DNA of 62,961 nt, filler included, from Calcarisporiella thermophila CBS 279.70 (GCF_041956535.1; 5 parts of 5 records of this genome joined end to end with filler, not necessarily neighbours in it); one strand, 5' to 3'. Counted from the whole stretch's first letter, positions 1 to 20,638 are shown. Made by a program: numbers and translations. The notes: generated by a model not told the origin, from the sequence alone.

Positions 1-98
1 TTATTTACAAGTTGGCATGGCTCCTGGCGGTAGTCACCTTTTCTAGAGTATCCGATCTAGCACGCATGGACCTTTAGTCGACCGCGGTTGGAGAAACA

Positions 99-1698: not shown

Positions 1699-2451
1699 TT
1701 ACTCTCTGCAATTGTAGCATTTTCCGAATCTTTGGAACTTTTGCTTTTGCCTGAAATTCGTTGTTCTTTTACGAGAAACGTTATTGTGTTCCATCGACAT
1801 CGTACCATTATCGTCTTCTGCATTCTGACTACATCCTTCGCTTTTATCAGTGTATGATGAAAGAGTCTTGCCCCAATTGATAGCAGCGTCATAAGAAACC
1901 GCTAATTTAATGGCCTCTTCAAGGGATTTCGGCAATCCCGCGATGACTTGTGTCCTCACTCTGGGTTTTAATCCGTTGATGAACATAGTCATTGTCATTA
2001 TATCACCGAAGGAATCCAGTTGTCCAAGGATGATGCGGAACTGGAAGACATAATCCTGAATGCTTTTAGTTTGTCGAAGCATCTTCAATTGATTACATAG
2101 GGACATTTGGTAATCAGCACGTTCGAAAGCCGCAATAAGTTTGTTGCCAAAAGCTTGCCATTCTTTTGGTGTATCTTTCATCAACTTGTTTGATTGATAC
2201 CACTGTTGAGCGGTGTCTCTCAAGTACGATGCAGCTGTTGCGACCCTCCGTTGATCGGGGATTCCCATCGCTTCGAATATTGTGTCAACTTGCCGAACCC
2301 AACTTCGCGCATTCTCCCCATCTCGACCATGGAACAGTGGCAAAGGAATTGAGATAAAACCTTCTTTGGAATTTTGCAAAGTATTTGAAACTATCTTCTC
2401 AATAAGGGTAGCCAGCTGCTTTAGGATGTCTTCGAGAGAGTTTTGATCCAT
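1699..2451 (-). CDS. Ty3/gypsy gag (capsid domain plus truncated CCHC zinc knuckle)
   Basis: LPLFHG...W...AASYLRDTAQQW...LRQTKSIQDYVFQF...FINGLKP retrotransposon gag pattern, ending KCYNCRE* (knuckle cut by a stop). Confidence 0.9.
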   Translation of the reverse strand: MDQNSLEDILKQLATLIEKIVSNTLQNSKEGFISIPLPLFHGRDGENARSWVRQVDTIFEAMGIPDQRRVATAASYLRDTAQQWYQSNKLMKDTPKEWQAFGNKLIAAFERADYQMSLCNQLKMLRQTKSIQDYVFQFRIILGQLDSFGDIMTMTMFINGLKPRVRTQVIAGLPKSLEEAIKLAVSYDAAINWGKTLSSYTDKSEGCSQNAEDDNGTMSMEHNNVSRKRTTNFRQKQKFQRFGKCYNCRE

Positions 2452-3183: not shown

Positions 3184-6100
3184 TTACCTACCTATTAAAA
3201 ATGATCAAATGGCGCAAATGAGAAATAGATCCCATTTGTATCTAGCAAAATGAATTGGCTTAGTTACAGGCTAATAAATTTAAATGAATGGTATGAATGA
3301 GTATATTCCATCAGTATTCAGTAGAATGGATGCAATTAGTATGAAAAAGAGTTTTACTTACTGCCTATTAGTGTTAATGGAATGGCACAGATGTGGAATA
3401 TGTTCCATCAGAATTCAATAGAATGGACGCACTTATTGTAGAACAGGGTGCCACTTACGGACTATTCGAGATAAGCAAATGGCATATACGAGGAATATAT
3501 TCCATTAGCATTCAACTCATTGACAGCGTGGAGTGTGTAATGGTGCGCTACTTACAGACTATTCAAGATAAGTGGGTGGCAGATGGATAGCAGAGAGATA
3601 TGTTTCATCAGTATTCAGTAGAAAGGATTCCATTAGCATTTAATTCATGGACTGCGTTGACGTGTGGAATAGAGTACTACTCACGGGCTATTCAAGTTAA
3701 ACGAATGGCACAAATGAGGCATATATTCAATTAGCATTCAATACATTGGCTGCGTTGAGTGTGGGATAGAGAGTTACTTACAGTCTATTAGAGATAAGCG
3801 AATGGTACAAACGGGGAAGATATTCCATTAGCATGCTATACATCGAATGCGTTGAGTGTGGGAGGGATAGCTACTTACTGACTATTCAAGATAAGCGAAT
3901 AGCACAAATGAGAGATATATTCCATTAGCATTCAACACATTGATTGCGATGGGTGTGGAATGGAATGTTACTTACTGGCTATTCGAGATAATCGGATGAC
4001 ACATATGAGAAATATGCTCCATCAGTATTCAGTAGAATGAATGCTATGTTAGTATGAAATGGAGTGCTCCTTACGTCCTATTCAATATAAGCAAATGGCA
4101 CAAATAAGAAATACGTTCCATCAGTATTCGGTAGAAAGGATGAAATTAGTGTGGAATGAAGTGTTACCGCCTATTAGGGATAAGCAGGTGACAGAAATGA
4201 GAAATATGTTCCATCAGAGTTCAATAGAATGGATGCACTTAATGTGGAAAAGAGTGCTACTTACCAACTATTCAAGATAAGCGAATAGCACGGATGAGAA
4301 ATATATTCAATTCAACACATTGGCTGCGATGAATGTGGAAAAGGGCGCTACTTACGGACTATTCAAGGTAAGTGGACGGCACAATTGAGAAATATGCTCC
4401 ATTAGTACTCAGTATATAGGATGCATTTAGCGTGGAAAAGAGTACTACTTACTGGCTATTCAAAATAAGCGAATGGCACAAACGAGGTATATATTCCATT
4501 AGTATTCAATACATTGACCGCGTTGAGCATTGAATGTGTGCTACTTACAGCCTATTATATATTAGCAAATGGCACAAATGAGGCATATATTCCATTAGCA
4601 TTCAGTACTTTTAATTAGTTGAGTGTGGAATGGAAAGCTACTTACCAACTATTTAAGATAAGCGAATGGAACAAATGAGGCATATATTCTCTTAGCATTC
4701 AATACACTGAATGCATTGAGTTTGGAATGAGCGCTACTTACCAACTATTTAAGATAAGCGAATGGCACAAATGAGAGATATATTCCATTAGCATTCAATA
4801 CACTGAATGCATTGAGTGTGGAAAGGTGGGCGACTTACCAGCTATTCAGGATAAACAAATGGCATAAATGAGACATATATTCAATTAGAATTCAATACAT
4901 TGACTGCGTTGAGTGTGGAATAGAGCGCTACTTACGGACTGTTCAAGATAAGCAAATGGCATATGAGGAATATATTCCATCAGTGTTCAGTATAATGAAT
5001 GCATTTAGTATAGAATCGAGCGCTACTTACCAACTATTCAAGATAATCAAATGGCACAAAAAATAAGTGTCTTCCATTAGTGTTCAATTGAAAAGATGAA
5101 ATTAGCGTGGAATGGAGTATTACCGCCTATTAAGGATAAATAGATGGCATAAATGAGGGATATATTCTATCAGTATTTAGCAGAATGGATGCACTTTGTG
5201 TGGAATCGAGTGCTACTTACCGACTATTCAAGTGAATGGCACAAATGAAAAATATATTCCATTAGCATTCAATTTATTGACTACGTTGAGCGTGGAATGG
5301 AGAGCCACTTACGGACTGTTCAAAATAAGCGGATGGCACAAATATATGTGACATATATTCAATTTAGCATTAACACTTTGAGCGCATTGAATGCGGAGTG
5401 GAGTGTTACTTACTTGCTATTCAAGATAAACAAATGGCACAAATGAGACATATATTCACATATATTCAAACCATTAGCATTCAATAAATTGAATGCGTTG
5501 TGAAATGAGTGCTACTTACAGCCTATTAGATATAAACGAATGGCACAAGTGGGGAAAATGTTCAAATCAGCATTCGGTACATTGAATGCGTTGGGTATGG
5601 AATGGAGATCCACTTACCGACTATTCAAGTTAAGCAAATGGCACATATGAGGAATATATTCCATCAGAATTCAGTAGAAATGATGTATTATGAGTATTAC
5701 TTACGGGCTATTCAAGATAAACGAATGGTACAAATGAGACATATATCCAATTAGCATCCTATACATCAATTGCGTTGAATGTGGAATGGAGCGATACTTA
5801 CATCCTGTCAGAGATAAGCGAACGGCACAAACGAGAAATATATTCGATTAGCATTCAATACATCGACTGCGTTGAGTGTGAAATGGAGAGCTACTTACCG
5901 ACTATTTAAGCAAAGCAAACGGCACATATAAGGAATTTACTCCATTAGCATCCAATACATCGACTTTGTTGAGTGTGGAATGGAGTGTTACTTACCGACT
6001 ATTCGAGATAAATGAATGGCACAAATAGGGAATATATTCCATTAACATCCAATACATTGGCTGCGTTGAATGTGGAATAGAAGGCTACTTACGGTCTATT

Positions 6101-8879
6101 CAAGATAAACGAATGGAATAAATAAGAAATGTATTCCGTTAGCATTCAATCCATTGACTGCGTGGAGTGTGTAATGGTGTATTACTTACTGCCTATTGGG
6201 GATAAACAAATTGCACAAATGAGAAATATATTCCATTGGCACTCAATCCATTGACTGCAACGATTGTGGAGAGCCACTTACCGACTATTCAAGGAAAATG
6301 AATGGCACAGAAGAGAAATATATTCCGTTAGCGTTCTATACATTGATTGCGCTGAGGGTGAAGTGGCGTGTTACTTACCAACTATCCAAGATAAACAAAT
6401 TGTCGTCGATGTGGAGTAGATTCCATTAGCTTCCAATTCATTGATTGCGCTGAACGTGGAATGGAGAGCTACTTACGGCCTATTAGAGATAGGCATATGG
6501 AACAAATGGAAAATTTATTCTATTAGCATCCAGCAGCATAGATGCGCTTAGTGAGAAGTGGCATGCTACTTACCGGCTATTAGAGGCAAGCGAGTGGCAC
6601 AATTGAGGAATATATTCCTTTAGCATTCAACCCATTGACTGTGCTGAGTGTGAAATAAAGCGCTACTTACGGTCTATTCATGATAAACGAAATGTACAAA
6701 TAGGAAATATATTCCTTTAGCATTCAAATCATTGATTGCGTTAAGTGAGAAATGGAATACTACTCACTGCCTATTGGTAATAAAAGAATGGCACAAATGT
6801 GAAATATATCTCATTAGCATCCAACAGAATGAGTGTGCATAAAGGTGAAATGTAGTGCTACTTACATTCTATTCAAGGTAACCAGATGACACCAGTGCAA
6901 AGTACACTCCATTAGCATTTAATAAAAGGACCGCGCTGAACATAGAATGGAATACTACTTACGGGCTTGATAAGATAAAAGAAAGGTACCAATGAGGAAT
7001 ATATTCCATTAGCATCCAACAGAATGAATGTGCTTAATCGAGATCAGAGTGCTACTTACGGACTATTTAAGAGAAAAGAATAGCACCAGTGAGAAAAAAA
7101 GTTTCATTAGCATTAAGTAAGATAGAAGTACTTAATGTGGTATAGAGTGTTACTTACCGCCTATTAGAGATAGATGAATGGCACAAATAGGAGTGAGAAA
7201 TAATATTCTATTAATTTTCAATACATTGACCACGCTGAATGTGAAATGGATTGCTACTTACGGTCTACTCAAGATAAACAAATGGCACAAATGAGAAACA
7301 AGCTCCATTAGTAGTCTGGACACTGACTGTATATAGTGTGTAGCACAGTGCTACTTACCGTCTATTAGAGACAAGTGGATGGAACAAGCAAGAAGAGCAT
7401 ACCATTAGCATCCAATTGGCCAACCGTAGCAATGATTTAAAGTGACAACCTTTACCGGCTATTAAAGATAAAAGTGTGACAAATATATAAGACACGCTCC
7501 ATCAGAATATATAAGGATTGCTACTATCATAGTAGAATGCGATTATACTTACGAGCTTGTTAAGATAAACGAGTGGCACAAATAGGAAATATTTTAGCAC
7601 TCTGTGGAATGAAAATGTGCACAAAATAGTATTGCTCACGTTCTATAAAAAAATGAATGGGATATATGAGAAATATATTCCATTATCATTCAGCAAAATG
7701 GATGCACTTAGCGTAGCATGGGGTGATACTTACTGGCTGTTTGAGCTAAGCGATTGACACGCATGGGAAATATTTTCCATTAACATCCAGCAGAATGGAT
7801 GGGATTAGTGTGGAGTGGAGGGTTACTTACGGGCTTGTTAAGATAAACGAGTGACACCAATGCGAAATATATTCCATTAGCATTTTATGCATTGACTGCA
7901 TTGAATGTGAAATGGATTGCTACTTACGGTCTACTCGAGATAAACAAATGGCACAAATGAGAAACAAGCTCCATTAATAGTCTGGACACTGACTGCATAT
8001 AGTGAGGAGCGCAGTGCTACTTACCGTCTATTAGAGACAAGTGAATGGAACAAGCAAGAAGAGCATACCATTAGCATCCAATTGGCCAGCCGTAGCTATG
8101 ATTTAAACTGACAACCTTTACCGGCTATAAAAAATCAAAGCGTAGCAAAAATATGAGACATGACCCATCTGAATATACTAGGATTGCTACTATCATAGTG
8201 CAGTGTGGTGATACTTACTGTCTAATTAATGTGAACCAATAGTGTAAATGAATTGGAGTACATCCCATTAACGATTAACGTGATTGCGTCTTTATAATGT
8301 ATAAAGTACATACCGCCTATTTAAAGTAAACAAATGACAGGGATTGCCCAAACGCCTCCTTAGCAATCAATAGTAGACATTTTCATCTTGAAAAATTGAA
8401 ACTCACGCTCTTTTGACGGCAATGATACGCGCAAAATTATGGGCAAAAATTAGCATCAAAGTATGAATGGATGAAAAGGTGTCATGATAGTTACTTTCTA
8501 TATGCAATGGGTGACACGGTTAGTAGCAGTAGAATACATCTAAATTAATTGATAAAATGGTTCATGTCTAGTCAACTAGGGGCTACTTACCAACTGATTC
8601 ATTGGCACAATTGCAGAGGGAAAATGAGGTGAAGTCATCCGTTAGTTCTCAATTTAATAACTGCTCACGCGTAATAACAATACATACAGGCTAATTGTGC
8701 GAATGAATTTTGGACGTAGAATGCAAGTTAATCGCGGTGGAATATTAGGCAGCAATGGATCTCGAAATACCTGGCTCTTGTATCATTTCAGCCTCGAGTT
8801 TGGGGATGATGCTAGCCGTTGCAAGCTGCTGGATTGCGCAAACAACCACGATACTGACCGTCAATTTGACAAGCTGCAT
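3184..8879 (-). CDS. Secreted prepropeptide (95 aa) encoded by exon 1 (8879-8771), 57 three-nucleotide microexons (8690-8688 down to 3270-3268) and a terminal exon (3191-3184)
   Basis: Each repeat unit reads ...(T/C/A)AG|NNN|GT(A/G)... on the minus strand. Joining the NNNs to exon 1 gives an uninterrupted ORF with a signal peptide, KR site and amphipathic C-terminus. 42 of 57 junction codons end in C. The exact 3' end (CR*) is less certain than the rest. Confidence 0.88.
3192..8770 (-). repeat. Tandem array of 58 ~94-nt spliceosomal introns, mostly homologous to one another (period ~97 bp)
   Basis: Approximate minus-strand consensus GTAAGTAGCACTCCATTCCACACTCAACGCAGTCAATGTATTGAATGCTAATGGAATATATTTCTCATTTGTGCCATTCGCTTATCTTGAATAG (donor, GCTAAT branch site, pyrimidine-rich tract, acceptor). 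Confidence 0.93.
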
Positions 8880-9059
8880 TTTGGGTGATTGCGCTTTCTA
8901 GTAAATGGGGGGTTAGTTAGTTTGTCGACGGCGTTGGAAACCAGCGGCTGGGGAAAATGAGACGAGGAAAGGAAATGGCGCGCCTCTCCACGGCCCTTAT
9001 ATCCCTCATATTTGCCGAGGCGAGGTGCTGCTCGAGTGCCGGCTGCAGTTGGAGAAAAT

Positions 9060-9480
9060 CTTGTTTCGAGCGTATTTCGATTGACGATCGATCCCTGAGG
9101 CGGACATGAAACATCCAATCTTCAACCACCTCCGAAACTCTTCCCATTCGCAGTGCCCTATCCACGTGGAGGCCCCTCTGATTGGACCCTAGCGTTGATA
9201 TTGATGCACGTGGAGCGAAGAGAGAAGAGGCCGCGCAAGCTGCGCAGAGGGGCCGGCGGCGGTGCAGCCAACGAAGGATACTTGCTGCACCGGCTTCGAG
9301 AGAGCGCAAACCGGAATGGACGAGCAAGCTCGGCTCTCTTGCATTTCCCAAATCGAAATAGCCAATAGCTCTGCTGCTGCTCCTCCGCTTTGGCCTCTGT
9401 GCTTGTCCGGCATCAGCGGATAGCCCATGAATCCTAGAGCAGTGCACGCCGCTTGAACAGCTTGCCACGTGAGCATCAGC
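9060..9480. repeat. GC-rich sequence of unknown nature, homologous to ~36300-36745
   Basis: Collinear shared blocks: TTTCGAGCG..., GCTCTCTTGC.TTTCCCAA.TCGAA, GCTGCTGCTCCTCC, GTGCACG.CG.TTG..CAGCTTGC. Confidence 0.65.
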
Positions 9481-11366: not shown

Positions 11367-13108
11367 ATGGGTCAACTGCTGTTGAGTACACTAGTAGTAA
11401 CCTTGTGGGTACACTCTATCAATACATCCCCCGTCCTCAAATGTCGCTGCCTGCCCAAAGATCCATGTTGGCCAGATACTACAGCGTGGGATCGGTTTAA
11501 TACAACTCTCGGGGGACGTCTACTCGCCACTTTTCCGCCTGCGTACCCTTGCCATGACCCTCATTATGACGAAGCCGCATGTAATGTGGTCAAAAAACAA
11601 TGGAATAATCCTTTATGGCGAATTGACCAGGCTGGTGCGATGCAATATGAGACCTGGGAGGTAGATAATAATGCAAACTGCTCGTCGAACACAAATCGCA
11701 CTTCTCCATGCCATCAAGGCTCCATCCCAGAGTATTCTGTAGATGTCTCGGACCGTGCGGATATACAACACGCCGTGAGGTTTGCTGCCAACAACCGACT
11801 ACGTCTTACCGTCAAAAATACCGGGCACGACTTTCTTGGGCGAAGCACGGCACCAGGTTCACTAAGTATTTGGACTCATCATCTCAAAAATATCACCTTT
11901 CATGAGTCCTTCGACGCTAGCGGCTGCACCAAGGGAGTATCTGCAGTTACGTTAGGAGCCGGCGTTGAATGGGGCGAAGCATACGAAGCAGTGAGCAAGC
12001 ACAACATGGAAATAGTGGGGGGGCAATCTTTTACGGTTGGTGCAGCAGGTGGATATGCTCAGGGTGGAGGTCACAGTCCGCTTGGTCCTAAGTATGGTAT
12101 GAGACCGGACAACGTCCTTCAGATGGAGGTTGTGACGGCGGACGGAGAGCTGCGAATCGCCAATGCTTGCCAGAATAAGGACCTTTTCTGGGCCTTGTGT
12201 GGAGGAGGAGGAGGTACGTTTGGTGTTGTGACGAGTGTAACCTATCGAACGTATCCTTCAAATCGTTATTCGGGCGCCATTTACAACGTCCAAATCGGCA
12301 ACGCATCATACCAAGACCTTCTGCGCGATATTCTACTTTTGCAACCTGCTCTCTCTGATGCAGGCTGGTCTGGCAACTTGGCAATCTCGACAAATCCATT
12401 TTTATTTTCTACCTGACCAGCTCCTCAGCCGCCAACGCTTCTTTCCAGCAACACATTGCCTCGCTTGTACAAAAACATCCTGGAGCCCTCTTCACGGGCA
12501 AGTTGCAAGATTTCCCCACCTACCTCGATTGGCTGCGCTCTGCTATTTGGCTTCAAAGCCCGGATCCCGCTGGCAATTGCACCATCGTAGGGGGTGATAA
12601 TATTCTTATGGGATCTCGTCTAATTCCACGCAGCAATCTCGAGAGTAAATCTTCCGCGACTGAGCTTGCCCGTGTCCTCCTTCAAACCATGGCAACGCTT
12701 CCACCCAACAGCCCGCTTGGGTTAGGACTCCTTGGTGGAGGTGAAGTAGCGCGTAATGGTGGAATCAATGCCGTCAATCCCGCATGGCGTAAATCCCTCT
12801 TGCATACCCTCTACATGATATCCTGGCCCGAAAACTCTTCCAATCAAAAGCAAAACGAGGTAGCCTCTGACATCACCAGAGTTATACAGCCACTTCGTGA
12901 TCTCATCCCTGACTCGGGCTGCTATGCCAATGAGGCCGATCCAAATGAACCCAATTGGCAGCAGGCCTTCTACGGTGACAATTACTCGCGCCTCAAAACT
13001 ATTAAGAATCAAGTGGATCCGACCGGCCTGTTTGTGTGTCGCAAATGCGTGGGCAGTGAAGACTGGTCCGAAGACTTAAACTGTCCTAGATACTCAATAT
13101 CGCAATAG
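11367..13108 (+). pseudogene. Secreted FAD-linked oxidase (berberine-bridge-enzyme-like), split by one frameshift near 12390-12415
   Basis: Signal peptide, CRCLPKDPCWP, KNTGHDFLGRS (covalent FAD His), GGGHSPLG, GGGGGTFGVVT and C-terminal GCYANEAD/FYGDNYSRL/VDPTGLF. The second frame continues FYLTSSSAANASF...QDFPTY with no evident intron. Confidence 0.85.
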
Positions 13109-16522: not shown

Positions 16523-17224
16523 TTATTTCGGGGTATTAGCGAATGGATCCCATGTGGGATCTTTATGAGGCACATACTCCATGAAATCACTGACCAATTT
16601 CGCCGTCGTCTCGTTATATATCTTTCCAATGAGGTAGTTGGTCAGATCCATGCCCGCCTGAACTCCTGAGCTAGTGAGGATGTTTCCATCCTCCACCCAG
16701 CGCGCACTGCGGACCCACTTAACATTAGGCCGTTGTTGCGAGACCCAATCAAACGCCCTTTTGTTAGAGGTCGCCATTTTGCCGTCCAATAGACCTGTCT
16801 TTGCAACTAATGCCGAGCCCGTACACACGGTCATTAAGTATTCCAACTTGGGGTATGTTTGCTTGATGAAATCGAGGAGCACAGTGTCGTTGATCGATGA
16901 CCATGTGCCGATTCCTCCAGGAACCATGAGGATATCAAGGTTGGGGGCGCTGTTGAACGAGTGGGTTGCAAAAACACTCTGTCCAATCACTGACGGAAAG
17001 TTAGGCGGGACTGCACTTACAGGTCCAACCTCGTGGGAGATAACTGAAACGCTCAGGTTGGTAGGATTGACGGCCGAGAGCAAGTTCCAATATTCCAGCG
17101 GACCAAAGACATCGAGAACCTCGAATCCAGGGTAGACAATCACACCGACGGAACGGGAGTGGACGCCAGTTGATAGCACAGCGACTAGCGCCAAAGTCAG
17201 CAGGAAATTCCGGAGACACTTCAT
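16523..17224 (-). CDS. DJ-1/PfpI (ThiJ) family protein with N-terminal signal peptide
   Basis: YPGFEVLDVFGP, DILMVPGG, VCTGS nucleophile elbow, ARWVEDGNILTSSGV. Intronless, with a hydrophobic leader. Confidence 0.92.
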   Translation of the reverse strand: MKCLRNFLLTLALVAVLSTGVHSRSVGVIVYPGFEVLDVFGPLEYWNLLSAVNPTNLSVSVISHEVGPVSAVPPNFPSVIGQSVFATHSFNSAPNLDILMVPGGIGTWSSINDTVLLDFIKQTYPKLEYLMTVCTGSALVAKTGLLDGKMATSNKRAFDWVSQQRPNVKWVRSARWVEDGNILTSSGVQAGMDLTNYLIGKIYNETTAKLVSDFMEYVPHKDPTWDPFANTPK

Positions 17225-19308: not shown

Positions 19309-20638
19309 TTAAAGAGATAAATCGATAACAGCTCGGAAACGTAGCTTATTCGCCATCATTTCATCAAATGCAGTTTGAGCCTGATCAAGTGAATATTTCT
19401 TTATCATCGGCTTGCATCCAGTTAATTTGGAGAATTTAGCACATTCTTCGGAATCCTATTTACAGTGAATATTCATGCATCAAAGGTTAGCCTTTTATAG
19501 TCAAGATTGCTATTAAAACATCCCTGGTTATTAATACCTTTGCAACACCTGAATACCATCCCAGGACTTTTGCCCGTTTTTTAATAAGCATTGCTGCCTC
19601 AATGTTCAATGGTTCCAATGGTACGGCCGCTACGAGAAGTGTGCCATTTGTCGCGAGGCATTTTACTAGGGGCGAAATTGAATCAGCATGTGGAGCTGTA
19701 GCGATAACTAGGTTTGCGCCACCAAGCTTGTTAATTTCAGCAATCGCATCAACTTGCGATTGATTAATGTATGTATGAGCGCCAAGCTTCGTAGCGAGCT
19801 CTCGCTTTGAATCGCTGGTGGATAATACGACAGTAATGAAACCCATTTGACGTGCGTACTGAATGGCTAGATGTCCTAATCCTCCAACGCCTTGAATTGC
19901 ACATACATCCCCAGGTCGAAGTCCGGCATTACGCATGCCATTATAAACAGTGACACCGGCACAGAGCAAGGGCGCAATTTCAACTGGATCCATATCTTCA
20001 GGGCAGACAGCTACGGCTATAAAAATGCATTAATAGAATAAAATTGAGACTAGTGTCATATACGATAGACAAACGGTGAAATCCTAATTCTTACCATCCT
20101 CTCTCGCAATCATGTACTCTGCATAGCCACCATCAAAGGTTAATCCAGTTACAAATTCTTTTTCACACGCGAAATACTGGCCCGCACGACACATATCACA
20201 GGTGAAACAGTTACCACCTACCAGGTAAATGAACTTCAATTAAAATCTCTAAAGAATACGACAATCCCCACAGAGCCCAATAGATTAAGTTCTGTATCTC
20301 GCAACTATTTATTCCTTGTCCCCACTCCCACCCCCCTTTTCTTTTGTCTTCACCAGAGTTAAAAATTACATACCATGCCAGCCGACTCCAACCAAGGTTC
20401 CTTCACGCAACCTATCTGCTACTCGTGGACCACGTTTCGCGATACGTCCGCATACCTCATGGCCAGGTATTCTTGGATAAGATTTTGCCATTCCGGCTAA
20501 AACGGCCACATCGGAATGACACACCCCACATGCTAAGACTTTTATGAGAACTTCATGTTCACCAGGAGTAGGAATTGGACGTTTGGCGACTTGAAAAGGT
20601 TGATTCGGACCAGGAACTTCAACAACTTTCATAGACAT
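19309..20638 (-). CDS. Zinc-dependent alcohol dehydrogenase (MDR family), 4 exons
   Basis: CGVCHSD, GHEVCG, structural-zinc exon (GNCFTCDMCRAGQYFAC), PLLCAGVT, GVGGLG. GT-AG introns at ~20218-20373, ~20017-20094 and ~19456-19537. Confidence 0.93.

Follow-up and report, generated by a model that had tools for sequence, protein, structure and literature searches.

The DNA analysed here (the window, 62,961 nucleotides with filler included) consists of five parts of five records of the Calcarisporiella thermophila CBS 279.70 genome (GCF_041956535.1) joined end to end, and on its minus strand, between positions 8879 and 3184, an exon for a signal-peptide-like N-terminus is followed by 57 triplets, every one of which has AG before it and GT after it. 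We infer that this stretch is, with high probability, a genuine protein-coding micro-exon gene in which the intervening sequences are spliced out and each triplet is retained. The initial annotation of this DNA had described 57 exons of 3 nt in phase 1-1, and their coordinates, number and phase were confirmed; its underlying premises, that the triplets are real, symmetric coding micro-exons and that the gene encodes a secreted peptide, also hold in the reading put forward here. The literature yielded no description of runs of 3-nt exons, nor of micro-exons in Calcarisporiella.

Structure, splice signals and codons of the array

Exon 1 is 109 nt long and ends in phase 1, so that all of the triplets are phase 1-1, each supplying codon positions 2 and 3 of one residue and then position 1 of the next; together the 3-nt exons carry 171 of the ~288 coding nt. 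The donors flanking the triplets are of the GT(A/G)AGT type and the spacing of the triplets is mostly 97 nt, with 31 of the 57 inter-triplet introns exactly 94 nt long (range 76-126), and Tandem Repeats Finder accordingly returned a period of 97 for the array. The features of the gene are:

8771-8879, minus strand: exon 1, with the ATG at 8879, 36 codons plus 1 base, encoding a signal-peptide-like N-terminus and then the start of the pro-region.
8691-8770, minus strand: intron 1, 80 nt, donor GTATTT, found at the same position in paralogues L013 and L018.
8314-8690, minus strand: micro-exons 1-5 (CCT 8690, TTG 8593, AAA 8497, AGC 8409, GCG 8316), with old, diverged introns.
3268-8221, minus strand: micro-exons 6-57, predicted to encode the mature peptide, with each 97-nt unit supplying one residue.
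First bases of micro-exons 6-31, minus strand: 8221, 8124, 8027, 7930, 7833, 7736, 7642, 7555, 7458, 7361, 7264, 7160, 7062, 6965, 6868, 6770, 6673, 6576, 6479, 6381, 6284, 6192, 6095, 5998, 5901, 5804.
First bases of micro-exons 32-57, minus strand: 5707, 5620, 5522, 5416, 5315, 5223, 5126, 5033, 4938, 4841, 4744, 4648, 4551, 4455, 4358, 4267, 4170, 4077, 3978, 3881, 3784, 3687, 3558, 3461, 3364, 3270.
3192-3267, minus strand: last intron, 76 nt, with the weak donor GTAACT and the branch motif altered to GCTAGAT.
3184-3191, minus strand: start of the terminal exon, which with the last T of micro-exon 57 reads TGT AGG TAA (Cys-Arg-stop).

The translation of exon 1 has a basic start, a hydrophobic core, the residues ATA followed by S (an Ala-x-Ala-like site) and a short polar stretch, and the signal peptide was called by inspection of these features. 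At the other end of the gene, retention of the last intron gives TGT AAC TAA (Cys-Asn-stop), so that the frame closes as Cys-X-stop with or without its removal, and given the weakness of this intron the count could alternatively be put at 56 flanked micro-exons plus a terminal exon beginning CCT. The arrangement AG-NNN-GT is far beyond chance: when the genome assembly (28 Mb in 116 contigs, the scope of all own-genome searches) was scanned with a pattern of two units lying 60-120 nt apart, 41 matches were obtained compared to 6 for a reversed-pattern control, the window array accounting for 35 of the 41 and paralogues of the gene for 5.

Alignment of the 57 units showed GT and AG to be invariant, donor positions +3 to +6 to be kept in 93-96% of units, and a CTAAT branch motif to lie 43 nt before the acceptor with its branch A kept in 98%, whilst the figure for most of the remaining intron columns is only ~45-90%. 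Across the gene all 58 GT and all 58 AG (116 boundary dinucleotides) are intact, as is the ATG, and the 95 codons contain no stop. The splice signals of the array are thus under selection, and the introns have the look of U2-type introns, with GT...AG ends, an extended donor consensus and the conserved branch A. Within each intron of 3268-8221, conservation is stronger between the branch site and the AG (the 3' half, and above all its TGTGCCAT and TTTAT blocks) than in the 5' half that follows the donor, and RNAalifold run on 36 units predicted no pairs (0) and hence no structure joining donor and branch site. Departures from consensus comprise seven donors, namely GTAAAG (8124 and 7458), GTAATA (5126), GTAACA (4170), GTAACT (8497 and 3270) and GTAAGG (4077), and AAG acceptors before the exons ending at 8407, 7831, 7553 and 6963; the initial annotation had listed the four acceptors and the first three donor types as weak sites, all of which are present, and GTAACT and GTAAGG are additional to its list.

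The triplets themselves vary in the manner expected of codons. Triplet positions 1 and 3 hold 0.02 and 0.11 bits, the two lowest values among the 97 columns of the unit, and by our arithmetic the chance of these two particular columns ranking lowest is ~1 in 4,656; triplet position 2, which is the third base of a codon, is kept in 74% of units and in this resembles intron sequence. Between pairs of units with introns 17% different, positions 1 and 3 differ in 71% of cases and position 2 in 35%, a pattern of non-synonymous change far above silent change, for which the alternative account is homogenisation of the introns with selection guarding each codon. On either account selection treats the triplets as codons, and in exactly the frame that exon 1 dictates. 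This frame is open through 57/57 triplets and meets a stop within 8 nt of the last acceptor, whereas with random triplets of intron composition it stayed open in only 3.4% of trials, and the codon third base is C in 42 of 58 codons compared to 20% C in the introns (p = 2e-17).

The leader family and the predicted peptide

Kex2-processed precursors have been defined by a pro-region ending in KR, RR or LxxR, with Arg at P1, Lys at P2 and an aliphatic residue at P4 (PMC8528282). The last G of exon 1 together with micro-exons 1-5 spells A-F-E-K-R, a Kex2 site closing the pro-region, and F-E-K-R fits this definition at P1 (Arg), P2 (Lys) and P4 (aliphatic), the corresponding motifs of the paralogues being L-E-K-R, F-E-K-R and L-E-E-R. 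Searching the same genome with exon 1 recovered ~10 paralogous leaders, which were aligned. Two of these belong to intronless genes with continuous open reading frames (ORFs), L017 (2162-2503, contig 24) of 113 aa, identical to NCBI VTP21DRAFT_5961 of this early-diverging, thermophilic fungus, and L019 (2099-2416, contig 10) of 105 aa; the leader of L017 runs straight into ALEKR and that of L019 into VFEKR, at the same place as A-F-E-K-R in the window, and the joined window sequence is identical to the L019 ORF at 31 of 39 nt. Of five independent lines of evidence that point to the triplets being real exons, these intronless paralogues, which encode the same motif contiguously, are the most telling.

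A second micro-exon gene, apparently intact, was found in L013 (1300-5140; contig 5, ~782-783 kb, minus strand), with micro-exons at the same unit positions spelling V-L-E-E-R-A; L020 (contig 54) is a 92%-identical copy of it. One unit of L013 has a GC donor (GCAAGT), its array closes with CCG and then G-N-stop, and its introns belong to a subfamily unlike that of the window; as most of the array reads N in both L013 and L020, L013 is known from its first triplets and the end of its array. In L018 (contig 29), by comparison, the gene has decayed: it starts with TTG, and splice sites are broken in 3 of the first 6 units (the acceptor of micro-exon 2, which reads CGG, and the donors of micro-exons 5 and 6), such that L018 illustrates the outcome without selection, in contrast to the intact gene of the window. 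Unit positions 1-5 of the window gene are present in both L013 and L018. A further paralogue, L023 (P0005; contig 7, near the contig end), has a leader ending EKR and a 71-nt phase-1 intron four codons past the Kex2 site, and its mature part consists of two Cys-rich repeats without a Pfam match.

The conserved part of these proteins ends at the leader, since the predicted mature peptide of the window aligned to those of the intronless paralogues with a score no better than that of shuffled sequences. The family is therefore best described, from its sequences, as a conserved leader attached to hypervariable and unrelated mature peptides, an organisation which fits an outward-facing, fast-diversifying product. 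A leader profile run against 1.84 billion representative proteins gave six matches at E up to 0.001, four of which come from this genome (the two intronless paralogues, the spliced L023 with its Cys-rich repeats and a public model of the window gene, 176 residues long), and the other two, P0004 and P0006, of >1,100 residues and matched in many short stretches, were taken for low-complexity matches. Going by these four retrieved matches, the family would be confined to this species. Metagenome scans gave 0 matches with the intron-unit pattern and no relative with P0001, Pfam gave no match for P0001, P0002, P0003 or P0005, and the ESM Atlas contained no usable match, its model of P0001 being poorly confident.

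We propose that each short intron would be recognised separately, by intron definition, by the ordinary U2-type spliceosome using the GTAAGT donor, CTAAT branch and AG acceptor, and that the introns would be removed one after another, each removal leaving one triplet. The resulting mRNA would encode a pre-pro-peptide of ~95 residues which, after signal peptidase and a Kex2 cut following F-E-K-R, would release a 54-residue peptide. The predicted mature peptide has an acidic, Asp/Pro-rich head, one Cys near each end and a hydrophobic stretch, 28 residues long and composed of Gly, Leu, Val, Ser, Ile and Pro, in which G-S-I-L-G-like motifs recur. The two cysteines probably form a disulfide loop, a membrane-active or antimicrobial role is a reasonable guess, and our best reading of the product is a secreted, Kex2-released, two-cysteine peptide rich in Gly, Leu and Val.

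The public gene model P0003 (176 aa; 8748-9275, minus strand) starts in an upstream ORF that it joins to exon 1, and runs on through intron 1 until it meets the first stop. Its N-terminal extension is unsupported by the paralogues, as the similarity they share reaches only ~45-75 nt upstream of the ATG, and because the model stops in intron 1 the micro-exons are unannotated.

Several observations concern the genomic setting of the family. L015 (3190-5030, contig 30) is a 5'-truncated array of the L013 type, without exon 1, which starts directly after a perfect ~20-nt inverted repeat, possibly a rearrangement or insertion breakpoint. The start of contig 10 (L025:1-95) is a telomere-like 5-nt repeat, (CCTAA)n, with the L019 paralogue 10 kb away; the distance to a contig end is 9-15 kb for the window gene and no more than ~20 kb for the members on contigs 8, 33, 29 and 7, which suggests that the gene family is subtelomeric. 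The neighbours in the window are:

1699-2451, minus strand: Ty3-type ORF (Ty3 capsid domain, retrotransposon gag domain), lying downstream of the micro-exon gene at a distance of 0.7 kb.
11367-13108, plus strand: FAD-binding/berberine-bridge-type oxidase in two ORFs in different frames, with no obvious GT...AG intron at 12416-12503; the split may reflect a frameshift or an intron placed elsewhere.
16523-17224, minus strand: DJ-1/PfpI ORF.
19487-19993, minus strand: zinc-dehydrogenase fragment.

Array history and alternative explanations

The simplest history of the array is growth by tandem duplication, each unit consisting of an intron together with a single codon that was later altered. Gaining or losing a unit would change the peptide by exactly one residue and always leave the frame intact, and after duplication selection would have changed the two non-synonymous bases of the triplet. 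Units 1-5, which encode the end of the pro-region, are the oldest: their identity to the other units is 46-52%, whilst those other units are 62-74% alike on average. Two duplications can be traced within the array:

7265-8221, minus strand: recent block duplication, in which units 6-8 (8221-7931) resemble units 13-15 (7555-7265) at an offset of 7 units.
4078-5126, minus strand: older duplication at an offset of 10 units, which includes both GCG weak-donor units.

In the recent block the introns of units 6-8 and 13-15 are 79-96% identical, and the triplets of the two best-matching pairs (CCG and ACG) are unchanged. In the older duplication the GCG/GTAATA unit (5126) and the GCG/GTAACA unit (4170) are reciprocal best matches at 81% and have a 4-nt loss in the donor region in common. 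These two donors appear to be tolerated because the duplicated pair has diverged by 19% and yet both units are still in frame, which argues that GTAATA and GTAACA still work.

A DNA search of the genome with three units found only the window array and a relic of ~3.5 units on contig 16 (L012:3330-3650), which has one GCAAGT donor and no leader exon nearby; a related intron subfamily is restricted to this gene's paralogues. The intronless paralogues are most simply explained by cDNA-mediated intron loss, in which case they would be fossil evidence of correct splicing, and a run of 8 A lies ~190 nt past the stop of L017.

Some points weigh against the micro-exon gene. The splicing of the array is predicted from its sequence, and among the 1.84 billion representatives there is no transcript-derived protein with this leader, the sole entry for the gene being the mis-annotated P0003. 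For much full-length mRNA to be made, 58 sequential splicing events would demand very high fidelity at each intron, and seven introns have non-consensus donors, the last of them with a damaged branch site in addition. Moreover, the evolutionary direction between the micro-exon and intronless paralogues is one that we infer, and L014, L018 and L022 are pseudogenes. With several such relatives, the window copy might itself be a recently inactivated relic in which the weak donors and the damaged last intron block production of the peptide. The seven donors, the loss of the consensus branch A from the last intron, the three clearly decayed paralogues and the Ty3-type gag ORF nearby are all compatible with decay of this kind. 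We nevertheless consider recent inactivation very improbable: the boundaries, the ATG and the stop-free frame are complete, which is not the case in decayed L018, the GTAATA and GTAACA units predate an old duplication and have still been kept, and the Cys-X-stop ending does not depend on the last intron. Another possibility is that the array is a non-coding 97-nt minisatellite, its 5.5 kb being either removed as one intron or untranscribed; it is indeed a tandem repeat of period 97 at the DNA level, and splicing exon 1 straight to the terminal exon would likewise preserve the frame (Gly-Arg-stop). Such a repeat leaves unexplained the contrast between the two non-synonymous columns, the most variable of all, and GT, AG and the branch A, which show the strongest conservation; nor does it account for the five triplets that spell the Kex2 motif of continuous paralogue ORFs or for the open frame, and its product, ending directly past the pro-region, would have no mature peptide. 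We regard this explanation as almost negligible.

A genuine micro-exon gene could also be put to a different use. The initial annotation had proposed that skipping of micro-exons generates a combinatorial peptide library, and the arithmetic on which it drew was correct. Loss of TCG (6284) turns L-V-G into L-G, loss of TTG (6381) puts L in place of L-V, and CCT joined to AAA creates TAA, such that skipping the second micro-exon gives a stop; the 57 single skips comprise this 1 stop, 19 one-residue deletions and 37 deletions with a recoded neighbour. Stochastic or regulated skipping might thus produce a secreted ladder or library of variants used by the fungus, and the route envisaged is that, the introns being mutual copies, a donor sometimes pairs with the acceptor of the next unit to give single-residue deletions and recodings. 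In favour of this, 56 of the 57 single skips keep the frame and give a full-length variant, some leakiness is conceivable at the seven weak donors and the four AAG acceptors, homology among the introns would allow a donor to pair with the branch site and acceptor of the next unit, and the mature regions of the family are hypervariable, as for an outward-facing product. Schistosoma micro-exon genes (MEGs) have been reported to vary by micro-exon skipping (PMC10526429, PMC4350168). Against it, the conserved Kex2 site needs all of micro-exons 1-5, skipping of the second of these introduces the stop, selection has preserved particular triplets, the units with weak donors are of old origin, and the diversification that is visible is genomic, in the form of unit duplication followed by change at two non-synonymous positions. 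Furthermore, two studies describe exon skipping as an uncommon mode of alternative splicing outside animals and intron retention as dominant in fungi (PMC6142364, PMC12861292). Skipping as the main mode is weakened because the Kex2 site requires the first five exons, because the codons are preserved and because skipping is rare outside animals; we consider both the peptide library and the pairing route behind it unlikely, and the demonstrable diversity of the array, as judged from its units, is genomic.

Known systems and significance

Among known systems the closest analogue of the C. thermophila micro-exon gene would be the Schistosoma MEGs, which have a signal-peptide 5' exon and very short symmetric exons and encode small, secreted, lineage-restricted and fast-evolving products that are largely disordered (PMC10526429, PMC4350168). 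In both, a conventional signal-peptide exon comes first and symmetric micro-exons, any subset of which is in frame, hold most of the coding sequence. The exons of the Schistosoma genes are, however, of mixed sizes (3-81 bp) with introns of up to 5 kb (PMC10526429), whereas here 57/57 internal exons are 3 nt and the 94-nt introns are mutually homologous and in tandem, and the organism is a fungus. Nothing was found to indicate common descent with the platyhelminth MEG families, the genome being fungal and the four matches retrieved with the leader profile from 1.84 billion proteins all belonging to it, and we view the gene as an analogue rather than a member.

Single 3-nt micro-exons are known from animals and plants, for example in RPS24 and MAP4K5, from which it follows that a spliceosome can include an exon of this size (PMC8632122, PMC12207440). 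Those exons are isolated, lie between long introns and usually depend on exon-definition factors, whereas the window gene has 57 back to back. Fungal introner-like elements are look-alike spliceosomal introns of ~100 nt which multiply in a genome (PMC4457414), and were considered as a source of the introns. They were rejected, as the introns of the array are confined to one gene family plus the contig 16 relic and lack conserved secondary structure; introner-like elements are moreover dispersed in unrelated genes, whilst the window introns are in tandem and have multiplied together with a codon.

The predicted layout of the protein is a familiar one. K2PP effectors and other Kex2-released fungal peptides (alpha-factor, KEPs) have a signal peptide and a short pro-region with an aliphatic-x-Lys-Arg motif (PMC8528282, PMC7329392, PMC6339444), and the putative product resembles K2PP effectors and KEPs in its predicted signal peptide and short pro-region ending aliphatic-x-Lys-Arg ahead of the product. 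Unlike KEPs, it has one Kex2 site and not repeated cores, and one codon per exon is without counterpart there. No homology to known effectors or KEPs was found, the paralogues having no Pfam match. The precursors of cone-snail toxins and amphibian skin peptides likewise combine a conserved leader with a hypervariable mature peptide. The C. thermophila family is like them in its conserved signal and pro-region, dibasic site and unrelated mature peptides (Gly/Leu-rich here, Cys-rich in L023), but it is fungal, is found in a single species, shares no homology with them and has a wholly different gene structure.

If splicing were confirmed, the run of minimal exons in the window would be, to our knowledge, the longest described, with a peptide encoded one residue per exon in a coding region that is 97% intron. 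It would then provide a natural test of the limits of the spliceosome, combining 3-nt exons, 58 sequential events and competition between identical neighbouring sites, and an independently arisen fungal parallel to the schistosome micro-exon genes. It would likewise represent a new evolutionary mode for a coding tandem repeat, in which gain or loss of a unit is always in frame and an unequal crossover between 97-nt units alters the peptide only in steps of whole residues. Were skipping also to occur, the fungus would possess an RNA-level generator of diversity with single-residue resolution on top of the exchange of units at the DNA level. Confirmed splicing would further reveal a class of gene invisible to annotation, meaning that this secreted-peptide family, and maybe those of other genomes, would be undercounted, and the family may be a source of candidate membrane-active or competitor-directed peptides of this thermophile.

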